Positions 9,392-42,623 of a DNA stretch of 64,000 bases are shown here, piece after piece. Each line of letters starts with the position of its first letter. Positions within the stretch are counted from its first letter, which is position 1. The notes beneath the pieces are model-generated. The model was not told where the DNA came from. It did not search any database and saw nothing but the letters and a program-made list of their open reading frames with translations. This DNA is from Macrostomum lignano (Eukaryota). The position numbers and the translations under genes were made by a program. The stretch lies in NCBI GenBank assembly GCA_002269645.1, contig NIVC01000164.1:1-64000 (forward strand), read 5' to 3'.

Positions 9392-12300
9392 CTAATTCCG
9401 CTGTCTGAATAGCTTCAGAATCAGACAATAACAGCATTGGGATAGTATAAAATACATTATCATAGTTATAAATATGGTTCCTACAATTCCTACAACATAG
9501 TGTTGTTTAAAAAATTCTTGAATATGATATTTTGTTTGTTCGGCATCAGCAGTCTTATCATTCCGTTTGCAAACTGCTTCCAGATCACTGTTGCTGCAGC
9601 CGCAACCGGTAGCTCTTTTGTTATAATCAGCTGTCACTAATTGGCTGACGGCCAGCAAGCCAATCGGGTTGGGCTGCGAATCCTGGCAGCCAATCGCAGC
9701 GAGCTGACCCGAAGTTTGCAGGATGACGCAACCGGCCTCTTTAGTTGCCGAGCCAATCCTTGATCGAGGGATGGAAAAGTACTAATAGTATGGTTAAACA
9801 ATGAGTAGTAGTTATAGTATATGTGACTATACTATATAGTTTGGCTGTAAGTATTACAACAATTCTATCAATATGGAGACTGTGGCGTAAGCAGAATTCT
9901 AACGTTGTGCCTTTAACTCACTGGAGTCCCTATTTATTGGTTAACGGCGCCGCCCTCTGTCTCTTGGTTGGCGCCTCTCTGTCTCTTGGTTGGCGCCTCT
10001 GTCTCTTGGTTGGCGCCCCTGTCTCTTGGTTGGCGCCCTTGTCTCTTGATTGGCCCCCTGTCTCTTGGTTGGCGCCCCTGTCTTTTTGTGGGCGCCCCTG
10101 TCTCTTGGTGGGCGCCCCTGTCTCTTGGTTGGCGCCCCTGTCTCTTGGTTGGCCCCCTGTCTCTTGGTTGGCCCCCTGTCTCTTGGTTGGCGCCCCTGTC
10201 TCTTGGTTGGCGCCCCTGTCTCTTGGTTGGCCCCCTGTCTCTTGGTGGGCGCCCCTGTCTCTTGGTTGGCGCCCCTGTCTCTTGGTTGGCGCCCCTGTCT
10301 CTTGGTTGGCCCCCCTGTCTCTTGGTGGGCGCCCCTGTCTCTTGGTGGGCGCCCTCTGTCTCTTGGTTGGCGCCTCTCTGTCTCTTGGTTGGCGCCCCTG
10401 TCTCTTGGTGGGCACCCCTATGGTTTGGCTTGGTGCTCCTGTGGCTTGGTCCATATTTAAGTGCCTTCCCTTTCCGAGAAGTGACTAAAATTGAGCTAAA
10501 ATGTACATCGTCAAGTTTGAATATTGAATTGGATACCACTGAATGTTGCTTGTTCCTCCGAATTCGTTCCAGACGCATTGGTTGGTGCTGATGATGGAGC
10601 AGTCGCAATAGAGGATGCCGCCGTCAGGGCAGGCTCTCATGCCCAGCAGCAGTGACTTGCTCAGAAGGGAGCTCGCCTCGGCGCTGCTGCGAACTGTGTG
10701 CGATTTTAGAATGATATACAGGGCGAATAACTAGGAAGTAAATAATTGTTGTAAATAAAAGTTTAAGTCTCAAAAATCAGCTGAATTTCATTTTCATGCG
10801 GCTTGGAACATCAATTGTACCATTCATTGGTTAGTAAGATTGCGCAATACTTTAAACCAGGGGTCGGCCATATGAGGCCCGCAAAGCCTCTCTACCCGGG
10901 CTTCGGGTCCTTTGAAGCTTCACAATAATATCTCTCCTCTTTCCTCTCTCCTATCTCCTCTCTCCTCTCTCCTCTCTCCTCTCTCCTCTCTCCTCTCTCC
11001 TCTCTCCTCTCTCCTCTCCCCTCTCTCCTCTCTCCTACCTCCTCTCCCCTCTCTCCTCTCTCCTTTCTCCTCTCTCCTTTCTCCTCTCTCCTCTCTCCTC
11101 TCTCCTCTCTCCTCTCTCCTTTCTCCTCTCTCCTCTCTCCTCTCTCCTCTCTCCTCTCTCCTCTCTCCTCTCTCCTTTCTCCTCTCCCCTCTCTCCTCTC
11201 TCCTCTCTCCTCTCTCCTCTCTCCTCTCTCCTTTCTCCTCTCTCCTCTCTCCTCTCTCAAATCTCCTCTTTCCTCTCTCCTCTCTCCTCTATCCTACCTC
11301 CTCTCCCCCCTCTCCTACCTCCTCTCCCCTCTCTCCTCTCTCCTACCTCCTCTCCCCTCTCTCCTCTCTCCTCTTTCCTCTCTCCTCTCTCCTCTCTCCT
11401 CTCTCCTCTCTCCTCTCTCCTCTCTCCTTTCTCGTCTCTCGTCTCTCCTCTCTTCTCTTTCCTCTCCTTCTCTTCTTTCCTTCTTTTCAATCCTTTTCTA
11501 TTCCCTCTCCTCTCTCCCCTCTTCTGACCCACAGTGATGCGCTAGGTTCTCCATTTTGGAACTTAAGTTAAAAATGCTTGCCGAGCCCTGCTTAGAACTA
11601 CCAATATTTGTCTGAGATAATTTTTCTTTAAAAAGAAACCAAGAAACTCAACAGATTTCGTTATTTTAACAAAATGAGTATGAATGACTGCATTTCGTGA
11701 CACGAGGCTCACAATCATGCCAATTTCTCTCACCGAAATCCGCAAACTCATCAGCACTGCTTTGGCTGTCAAACTGCACCAAATTGAGGTCGCAGTTGCC
11801 CTTGGCAACGACCGATGAGTTAGTGGCCAGGGTTCGAGCGGCGATGCAAAACTCTTTCCACCGGATCCAGTGGCCGCAAAATCCTTCCTTGACTGCGGCA
11901 ATTCTCAGAGCCAGTGAGGAAAAAGAGGGCCAGTTTTTGTTGTGCGGGATTTTCGCTTTTAGTAAAAGCGTTTTCGGGCTGCAAATGATAGCGTGAAATA
12001 TGCAAAAATTAAATAAATTTAAAACATGAAATTTAATATTTTGGTAATTTGCTGACCGACCCATTTATGCTGACTGTCACAGGAAACGCTTCTCTGAGTG
12101 ATGTTCTCCGTTTTCTTCCAGATTGAGCTGTATTGTAGTAACAGAAAAATTATAACTCATAGATAGATAGGTAGATAGATAGATAAATAGGTAGATAGAT
12201 AGATAGATAGATAGATAGATAGATAGATAGATAGATAGATAGATAGATAGATAGATAGATAGATAGATAGATAGATAGATAGATAGATAGATAGATAGAT

Positions 12301-41400: not shown

Positions 41401-42623
41401 AGTACAGCTGTGTTTTCGGAACGGATCTTGCAAATTGCTTGCTTTTTTGCATAGCAATGCATGAAGTTTTGCACTAGATAAATAGTCCGAGAAAATCCAA
41501 AAATACACAAAACAGCTGGAGCCAATGATAATTTTGCTGGAACTCTGCTAGACTGATCCTTCTAGGAGTTGGCCATGATTGGTATATTGTCATTTTTAGA
41601 GCTCCCGTAGATTGTGAAACTGGACCCAATGCAAACGTTGCTCACCGCTGCAGACGAAAGGTTGTCAAGTTTCTGTCGTTCCATACAATACGCCGTTGAG
41701 TCGTGCCGTTTTCTGCAATTAGGGAGCAATTAGGGAGATCCCATTTGAAATGTATACAATGTGCAACGCAATGTCTTTTAGAGCTTTCAACTCATTTAAT
41801 TGTGGATTTGTGATTGATTTGTAAAAATCGCCATCACTCCAAACAACTATTTCTTTGTGAGTTAAGCAGAGTTGGCCGCATGACATTCATGTGAGTAGGC
41901 GTTTTGAGCTGCACACAAATTAGCTATAATAACTAAATATGACTAAAAGCAGACTAAACTGAATTTTCTAGCGTTCACCCAGCTGTGACAGGGTAGCAGT
42001 TACTAGCAGCTCCGAATCGGCTGACAAAGCATGTGACGCCCCCCCCCTCTTTCTCCAGCAGGCTCGGCGCCCCCCCCTTCCAGCAGGCTTGGCGCCCCCC
42101 CTTTCCAGCAGGCTTGGCGCCCCCCTTTCCAGCAGGCTTGGCGCCCCCCCCCTTTCCAGCAGGCTTGGCACCCCCCCCCCTTTCCAGCAGGCTTGGTGCC
42201 CCCCCTTTCCAGCAGGCTTGGCACCCCCAGGCGCCCCCTGGCTCAGAGCTGTGGCAGTAATGCAGGGCCGATGGAAGTTGCTACCTTTACAGTCTTAGCA
42301 CTGTAGAAGCAGCTGCTGTGCGAGCTTGCAACTTTCTATTTTAAAAGTATTTAATTAGCGACCAGCATTTTTTTCATTCGCTCTTACTCATCAACGTCAC
42401 CGTGAGATTGTGCATTGTGTCTCCTGGGCGTACATTGGCATCCTTCCTCTGCTTCTCCAACAAAATGCTCATGTCGAATTCATCGGGTGACTTCTTCAGC
42501 CAGACAGTCCAGCGAGGGGCTCGACTTTGGTTGGCGTTGTCGCCATCCCTGTCGGTGTTGCGGAGATCTTTCACGGTGTCTTCAGAAAGCTCAAACTCGA
42601 CTCCGCCCGTGTGCTCGCTTGAA
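38498..42623 (-). CDS. Paralogue C: CUB-like + degenerate CTLD + single TM receptor; exons 42623-42388, 41712-41646, 41185-40947, 40202-40040, 38849-38498
   Basis: Donors GTAAGA, GTGAGC, GTGAGC, GTAAGT; all in frame, phases 2,1,2,1,2; 67-nt micro-exon equal in length to paralogue A; TM IVLWIVLPLAFTVLLVLTIVLYY then KCRRQ stop-transfer; ends TSPV*. Confidence 0.85.
40280..40575 (-). mobile_element. CORE-type tRNA SINE with (TTA)n tail
   Basis: Head GGTTGTAGCCAAGTGG..GGTTCGACAC; GAGTTAAGTGTCTTGCTCAAGGACAC resembles the reverse of the MIR CORE domain; (AAT)n at 40280-40350. Confidence 0.75.
42030..42245. repeat. ~22-24-bp GC-rich minisatellite (TTCCAGCAGGCTTGGCGCCCCCC)n in an intron of paralogue C
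   Basis: About 8 copies; probably MITE-derived. Confidence 0.85.

Follow-up and report, generated by a model that had tools for sequence, protein, structure and literature searches.

The first 64,000 nucleotides (nt) of contig NIVC01000164.1 of the flatworm Macrostomum lignano (positions 1-64000, referred to here as the window, with coordinates identical to those of the contig in assembly GCA_002269645.1, Mlig_3_7) carry three neighbouring multi-exon genes in tandem on the minus strand, which we call A, B and C. We consider it probable that these genes are restricted to Macrostomum and derive from one ancestor, and that their products are single-pass membrane glycoproteins. The data directly show the gene structures, the annotation of B and C from RNA-seq, the coding constraint on A, the taxonomic restriction and the lack of recognisable domains. 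That the products are surface binding or adhesion glycoproteins inserted without a signal peptide is our best mechanistic guess, and an immune or receptor role would be pure speculation. Overall, we regard the locus as an ordinary lineage-restricted gene family.

The gains are correspondingly modest and have no bearing on a long-standing open question. One probably real unannotated gene (A) is added to the M. lignano gene set, two GenBank hypothetical proteins are joined as a family by exon architecture where sequence comparison fails, and one of the three copies of C in this neopolyploid is flagged as having lost its start codon.

Exon architecture and probable common ancestry

A first-pass annotation of the window, made from the sequence, had proposed that three minus-strand genes can be spliced in frame with intron phases 2,1,2,1,2. 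By enumerating open segments bounded by AG...GT on the minus strand, we recovered all 15 exons of the proposed lengths. Each five-exon set joins into one frame closed by a stop codon, all splice sites are canonical and the phases are as proposed, and spliced B and C are exactly the GenBank proteins PAA89097.1 (450 amino acids (aa), BOX15_Mlig026518g1, genomic range 20680-33525) and PAA89098.1 (301 aa, BOX15_Mlig017451g1). The proposed lengths stand for the remaining exons but not for core exon 4 of B, which measures 184 nt in the GenBank annotation and not 214 nt: the annotated acceptor at 23793 (…cccgcag|TTGCC) lies 30 nt downstream of the 23823 chosen earlier, with the phase unchanged. Core exon 1 of B and C does end in LTVTL(P/M)+A|GTAAG as described, with P in B and M in C, and the three short motifs said to be shared by the peptides of A, B and C can be seen in a loose form only. 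The description of the genes as hidden and unannotated holds for A but not for B and C, both of which GenBank lists as hypothetical proteins. Because the GenBank annotation of Mlig_3_7 was built solely from genome-guided RNA-seq transcript assemblies (PMC5730564), the junctions of B and C are transcript-supported.

For B and C the argument from architecture is strong, since the annotation, and not the first-pass proposal, supplies their exon structure. Both genes have five introns with phases 2,1,2,1,2, as does the paralogue P0013, and both begin with a tiny first coding exon that ends in phase 2. When the proteins are aligned, four of the five intron positions lie at most one residue apart and the fifth, the last, about five residues apart, and an LTVTL strand occupies the identical exon end in the two genes. 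Given typical metazoan intron phase frequencies, the phase pattern would arise by chance with a probability of about 1e-3. The common phases, the near-coincident introns and the tiny phase-2 first exon thus support common ancestry, and we accept B and C as diverged paralogues.

The three genes could instead be unrelated neighbouring orphans whose similar architecture is coincidental, in which case there would be no tandem family. Sequence comparison counts against common ancestry here, since significance is never reached in pairwise or profile comparisons: B against C gives E ~1 in BLASTP and E=0.12-0.16 in hhalign (100 columns with 31% identity at E=0.12), A against a profile of B, C and their relative P0006 (described below) gives E=0.27 in hhalign, and the BLASTP comparison of A with P0006 is likewise not significant. 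However, coincidence would have to account for five identical intron phases in an annotation made independently of the first-pass proposal, for nearly coincident intron positions and two tiny phase-2 first coding exons, and for the LTVTL strand at the same exon end. It would also have to produce in both B and C the same order of beta region, helix, Cys motif, transmembrane (TM) segment and basic tail with a juxtamembrane Cys, in genes that adjoin on one strand, together with shuffle z-scores of 3-4.7 (3.2 for B/C exon 1 and 4.7 for B/C exons 1-4). We judge such a coincidence improbable.

The position of A is less firm. A has the B/C-type phase architecture, a TM segment in its last exon and a tandem position on the same strand, and its exon sizes (263/67/245/157/367) are like those of C (236/67/239/163/352). 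In sequence comparison only the Cys motif of exon 4 stands out: local similarity between exon 4 of A and of C exceeds that of shuffled sequences (z=4.3, p=0.004). The phases, the exon sizes, the last-exon TM segment, the Cys motif and the same-strand tandem position together make A a probable member of the family. A point on the other side is that the exon boundaries of A were selected in the first-pass annotation to fit the pattern, so that its architectural match is weaker evidence than that between B and C. The claim of a tandem family with one architecture is therefore upheld by annotation for B and C, whereas A matches in architecture but its membership is plausible rather than proven.

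A itself is most likely a genuine gene that annotation has overlooked. Exons 1-4 of A are covered by a second, diverged copy of the locus, L005 on NIVC01000434.1. All four exons are intact in this copy, although the flanking introns are about 4% different, and the sole insertion or deletion in the region is a 4-nt deletion in L005 that falls just inside intron 2. Core exon 1 is also present at 99.5% identity in L001. Over exons 1-4, the two copies differ at 10 synonymous and 9 non-synonymous positions, giving a ratio of non-synonymous to synonymous change (pN/pS) of 0.28 (Fisher p=0.005), compared with 1.86 and 0.83 in the other two frames. Such frame-specific constraint is the signature of a translated frame and is the reason that we take A to be real.

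It is nevertheless conceivable that A is not functional, being either a chance concatenation of open frames picked to resemble B and C or a pseudogene copy in decay. No part of A matches any protein in a database of 5.8 billion clusters, the GenBank annotation has no gene model there in any of the three copies of the locus, a search upstream of core exon 1 found no start-codon exon, and similarity to the B/C family profile falls short of significance. This possibility is hard to square with four of four testable exons remaining intact between diverged introns, with the avoidance of non-synonymous change in the predicted frame only, with splice sites that are all canonical and with a strong TM segment in the last exon. 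The missing GenBank entry is weak evidence, because transcripts overlapping repeat annotations were purposely excluded from the GenBank set (PMC5730564) and intron 1 of A (14940-12128) is nearly all a 2.8-kb (ATAG)n array. We consider a non-functional A unlikely.

Taxonomic restriction and domain content

An exhaustive HMMER search of 1.84 billion representatives with a B+C profile (E<=0.001) returned six matches, namely four M. lignano proteins of the B or C type, P0006 and P0007. P0007 is a spurious repeat protein and was discarded as a relative. P0006 (361 aa, E=3e-13, about 31% identity to the C type) is encoded on a 1.5-kb contig of SRA run SRR28338164 that is not annotated as M. lignano, and it is the only new relative that this profile search added. 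No other relatives were found among these representatives, and as far as public data go the family appears to be lineage-restricted, as had been claimed. In protein searches, reconstructed C matched M. lignano proteins at 99% identity and reconstructed B at 90%; word-indexed searches with B and C gave no matches beyond their own M. lignano copies. No fourth paralogue was detected when A, B and C were compared with the window by tblastn, and we found no literature on the locus names or on run SRR28338164. In these respects B and C resemble other M. lignano orphan genes, being Mlig_3_7 hypothetical proteins (PMC5730564) with three near-identical copies each, but they differ in being tied to one another, and to the unannotated A, through a common exon architecture.

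The P0006 frame is uninterrupted for 361 codons on its contig (L003, 1-1514). There is no in-frame ATG close to the 5' end, and a stop codon precedes the called start by 9 codons. The contig thus represents either an incompletely processed transcript or a sequence that lacks the first exon.

The first-pass annotation had assigned the products to CUB and C-type-lectin (CTLD) receptors that act in invertebrate immunity or recognition under diversifying selection. A CUB domain has about 110 residues and four conserved cysteines that form two disulfides, and a CTLD has about 115-130 residues, a WIGL-type motif and two to three nested disulfides. Several features recall such receptors. The N-terminal region is predicted to be all-beta, with 9-10 strands; the C...G...NCEWLIKV of A exon 1 and the C...CRYSFSL of P0006 bring to mind the first CUB disulfide and its 'C-W-I' strand; A has a 'WIG' at the exon 4/5 junction; and B shows a pN/pS of 1.2-1.3.

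The domain searches nevertheless speak against this assignment. Neither CUB nor Lectin_C nor MAM was found in A, B, C or seven family members by a Pfam-A hmmscan at E<=10, which gave only transmembrane-region noise (TMEM154, SIT and similar), and the family profile matched none of the PDB chain sequences. AlphaFold2 was run on the C-type paralogue P0013 and on P0006, each with a 7-sequence alignment, and gave models of low confidence (mean predicted local distance difference test scores, pLDDT, of 39 and 42, respectively). Both models have 9-10 beta strands in the first ~150 residues, followed by a helix, about 110 residues without confident structure and a TM helix. When compared with the PDB by Foldseek they retrieve generic beta-sandwiches, including the PIG-T lumenal domain, glycosidase accessory domains, pilins, the gamma-adaptin ear and GOLD, MSP and Ig-like domains, at TM-scores of 0.13-0.26 normalised to the query, and no CUB or CTLD is present among the top 50 matches of either model. 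Because the quality of the models is too low, we did not use these matches to name a fold.

The residues that would define the two domains fare no better. Alignments show no Cys in the first ~130 residues of B or C, which thus lack the CUB cysteines at aligned positions; an early pair is present only in A and P0006. The WIG tripeptide, which in A spans the exon 4/5 junction, is absent from B, C and P0006. The conserved Cys motif is about 25 residues long, and the segment after the beta region is predicted to form a helix and then to be unstructured. The pN/pS values of B are point estimates from about 40 substitutions, and A is at 0.28. We therefore rejected the CUB-CTLD label, which the proposed checks by HMMER and by AlphaFold and Foldseek failed to support, and we regard membership in these receptor classes as very unlikely.

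Comparison with known families leads to the same assessment. The family is like CUB proteins (PF00431) in its apparently extracellular-type all-beta N-terminal module of ~110-150 residues and, in A and P0006, in an early Cys pair with a 'C-x-W/Y-x-I/F' strand, but is unlike them in having no hidden Markov model (HMM) match, no cysteines in this region of B and C, no CUB among the top Foldseek matches of the low-confidence models and a domain split by phase-1 and phase-2 introns. CTLD receptors (PF00059) similarly are single-pass proteins with Cys-containing extracellular segments, but in this family no HMM match was obtained, neither WIGL nor WND is conserved as a landmark and the corresponding segment is predicted to be a helix and then disordered. 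MAM proteins (PF00629) share a single pass and a membrane-adjacent beta-sandwich ectodomain, but no MAM match was obtained in Pfam at E<=10. MAM occurs as an automatic UniProt name on two B-type entries, whereas close variants of the neighbouring gene are named RanBD1 and VPS13. The four entries concerned (A0A1I8HZJ6, A0A1I8GHT6, A0A1I8HZX8 and A0A1I8ISU7) are splice or assembly variants of B and C, and we set their names aside as noise, as they contradict one another and have no Pfam support.

Predicted membrane anchoring and topology

A, B and C each have one strong hydrophobic segment, which lies near the C-terminus (mean Kyte-Doolittle value 2.3-2.8 over 19 residues) and is encoded by the last exon in all three genes, in agreement with the earlier description of the products as single-pass. 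A basic stretch that includes a juxtamembrane Cys comes after the segment, and the AlphaFold models of P0013 and P0006 have a long helix over the corresponding residues. No catalytic or known signalling domain was found in the tail.

The part of the protein that precedes the TM segment is rich in N-x-S/T sequons, with 9-10 in B, C and P0006 compared with the ~3 expected from composition (p=0.0005-0.005). The alignment has few invariant columns, many of which are a sequon Asn or a Cys. The sequon excess and the conserved Asn and Cys point to an N-terminal part that is lumenal or extracellular, glycosylated and disulfide-bonded.

In the arrangement that we propose, a beta-rich N-terminal region of ~150 residues, probably a beta-sandwich with no assigned type, would lead through a short helix into a membrane-proximal segment that contains Cys; a single TM helix would then be followed by a short basic tail, which has a juxtamembrane Cys. 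As there is no encoded signal peptide, we suggest that the TM segment acts as a reverse signal-anchor that inserts the protein and places the N-terminal part outside the cell or in the lumen. There the N-terminal part would be N-glycosylated and disulfide-bonded and might function in binding or adhesion at the surface instead of as a signalling receptor. Pro-neuregulin-1 is an example of the export of a large N-terminal domain without a signal peptide. The flatworm proteins would share with proteins of this type a few hundred residues of N-terminal ectodomain, the lack of a cleavable signal peptide, a single TM segment and a C-terminus in the cytoplasm, but they have no sequence or domain kinship with them, and their topology is inferred only.

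Several observations weigh against this arrangement. The annotated N-termini of B and of P0013, the C-type paralogue, show no signal peptide, and translocation of ~300 residues without one is unusual, which leaves the topology uncertain. A differs from B, C and P0006 in that it has 14 Cys but shows no sequon enrichment, with 2 sequons where 2.6 are expected. The beta-sandwich, moreover, would rest mainly on predicted secondary structure.

The opposite topology, in which the large N-terminal part is cytosolic, the protein is held by a C-terminal anchor and there is no surface glycoprotein, would fit the lack of an N-terminal signal peptide in B, P0013 and the available P0006 sequence, a TM segment at least 300 residues from the N-terminus, and the presence of basic residues on the N-terminal side of the TM segment as well, RRR in B and RR in C. 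However, it leaves unexplained the three-fold sequon enrichment, the conserved Asn and the conserved N-terminal Cys. There is also more positive charge after the TM segment than before it, and the tails of 37-103 residues that follow it are long for tail-anchored proteins. The absence of a signal peptide counts for less in P0006, whose called open reading frame (ORF) starts at a non-ATG codon shortly behind an in-frame stop. We consider a cytosolic N-terminal part unlikely, and less likely than the N-out reverse signal-anchor.

If the proteins are indeed surface glycoproteins with a new fold, they would be an example of lineage-restricted membrane proteins that arose and diverged after tandem and whole-genome duplication. 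A bolder proposal would make them a new macrostomid-specific extracellular fold family, reaching the cell surface without a signal peptide and evolving fast through conflict-driven recognition, with A as the conserved founding member. We think this improbable; were it true, the conflict might lie, for example, in sperm-recipient or pathogen interactions in a reciprocally mating hermaphrodite.

Genomic copies, rates of change and other features of the window

The gene order C-B(-A) recurs on NIVC01001836.1 and NIVC01000434.1, so that the cluster occurs three times in the assembly. This triplication agrees with the redundancy known for the assembly of the neopolyploid line DV1 (PMC5730564; PMC10733133), and we attribute the three copies to that neopolyploidy.

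A, B and C are only ~20% identical to one another, in accordance with the rapid divergence that had been claimed for them, and this shows that the family changes fast over longer times. Comparison of the genomic copies did not demonstrate diversifying selection, which had also been claimed. B differs from its NIVC01001836.1 copy by 35.5 non-synonymous and 8.5 synonymous substitutions (pN/pS 1.32) and from its NIVC01000434.1 copy by 31 and 8 (1.23). For C, the corresponding numbers are 5 and 1 (1.45) and 17 and 9 (0.56). These values for B and C (1.2-1.3 and 0.6-1.5, respectively) are point estimates from small numbers of substitutions and seem consistent with a relaxation of constraint following genome duplication; the value for A is 0.28.

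The rate in B also raises the possibility that some copies are decaying after polyploidisation, and the same concern applies to C. In the NIVC01000434.1 copy, the sequence of the first coding exon of C is ATGAACAG|gt, whereas the window has TTGAACAG|gt, in which TTG replaces ATG and the start codon is lost. For this reason the GenBank protein starts at an internal Met, 55 residues into the beta region, and the window copy of C may accordingly be losing function. An upstream ATG in the first exon of C (ATGCACATTGAACAG) would splice out of frame and lead to early termination. The first intron of C is ~7.5 kb long and filled with satellite sequence.

Coding exons of A, B and C in the window, with positions on NIVC01000164.1
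Feature	Position	Strand	Length (nt)	Remarks
A core exon 1	14941..15203	-	263	Enters in phase 2, leaves in phase 1; encodes ...NCEWLIKV...LGVRLS
A core exon 2	12061..12127	-	67	Intact in L005
A core exon 3	11734..11978	-	245	6 mismatches and 0 indels relative to L005
A core exon 4	10537..10693	-	157	Contains the Cys motif; protein 100% identical in L005
A last exon	9392..9758	-	367	Includes stop codon; TM segment and 15-aa tail
B first coding exon	33500..33525	-	26	MSVTAIGK+AG, phase-2 donor; absent from the first-pass list
B core exon 1	26672..26886	-	215	Ends LTVTLP+A|gtaag; junction backed by PAA89097.1 and P0003
B core exon 2	26523..26580	-	58	
B core exon 3	25411..25676	-	266	
B core exon 4	23610..23793	-	184	Length from the RNA-seq-based annotation; Cys motif LRATCSDEVEYLDCYGEAGCNW
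B last exon	20680..21283	-	604	Includes stop codon; TM segment VAIAVVGAFLGIGAIGILV and 103-aa tail
C first coding exon	50170..50177	-		Beyond the span of the first-pass annotation
C core exon 1	42388..42623	-	236	Ends LTVTLM+A|gtaag; GenBank coding sequence starts at internal ATG 42472
C core exon 2	41646..41712	-	67	
C core exon 3	40947..41185	-	239	Ends ...SNCSVLASIAAQFSSYQKMKEL
C core exon 4	40040..40202	-	163	Cys motif DARCCNGSVMYYSRHCDSNNCTSPGQW
C last exon	38498..38849	-	352	Includes stop codon; TM segment IVLWIVLPLAFTVLLVLTI and 37-aa basic tail

The tail of B (20680-20900) is encoded by a 27-nt coding repeat, with five ADTATVHN(D/E) units in the window copy. There are seven repeats in the NIVC01000434.1 copy, and the NIVC01001836.1 copy is frameshifted and truncated. 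Scanning for poly(A)-signal hexamers 3' of the stop codons gave no useful information.

The introns of A, B and C are largely long tandem arrays (12159-14935, 21517-23569, 24138-25411, 27160-32717, 42735-43539 and 44258-49021), whose units include (ATAG)n x694, a 51-bp unit x40, a 35/181-bp array, a 20-bp unit x282 and 32/96-bp satellites. The lengths of these arrays vary among the three genomic copies of the locus. Debris of a long terminal repeat (LTR) retroelement at 34394-35047 (-) and 35002-35814 (+) is assigned to the 6.6-kb first intron of B. Its reverse transcriptase (RT) RNase H domain is on one strand and its integrase domains are on the other, which shows that the fragments have been rearranged.

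Further coding sequences noted in the window lie on the plus strand. A LITAF-like gene (7615-7953 and 8208-8441) converges on the 3' end of A and has a Pro/Gln-rich N-terminal exon followed by a zf-LITAF-like zinc-ribbon exon (PF10601, E=8e-25). The ORFs at 4099-4482 and 4817-5377 have one weak homeodomain-like HTH_32 match and one QRICH1-domain match, and may be transposon-derived or domesticated. Finally, the ORF at 60688-60972 carries a RING / ZZ-type zinc-finger signature (PF13920, E=1e-5; PF00569, E=1e-4) and is probably an exon of another gene.

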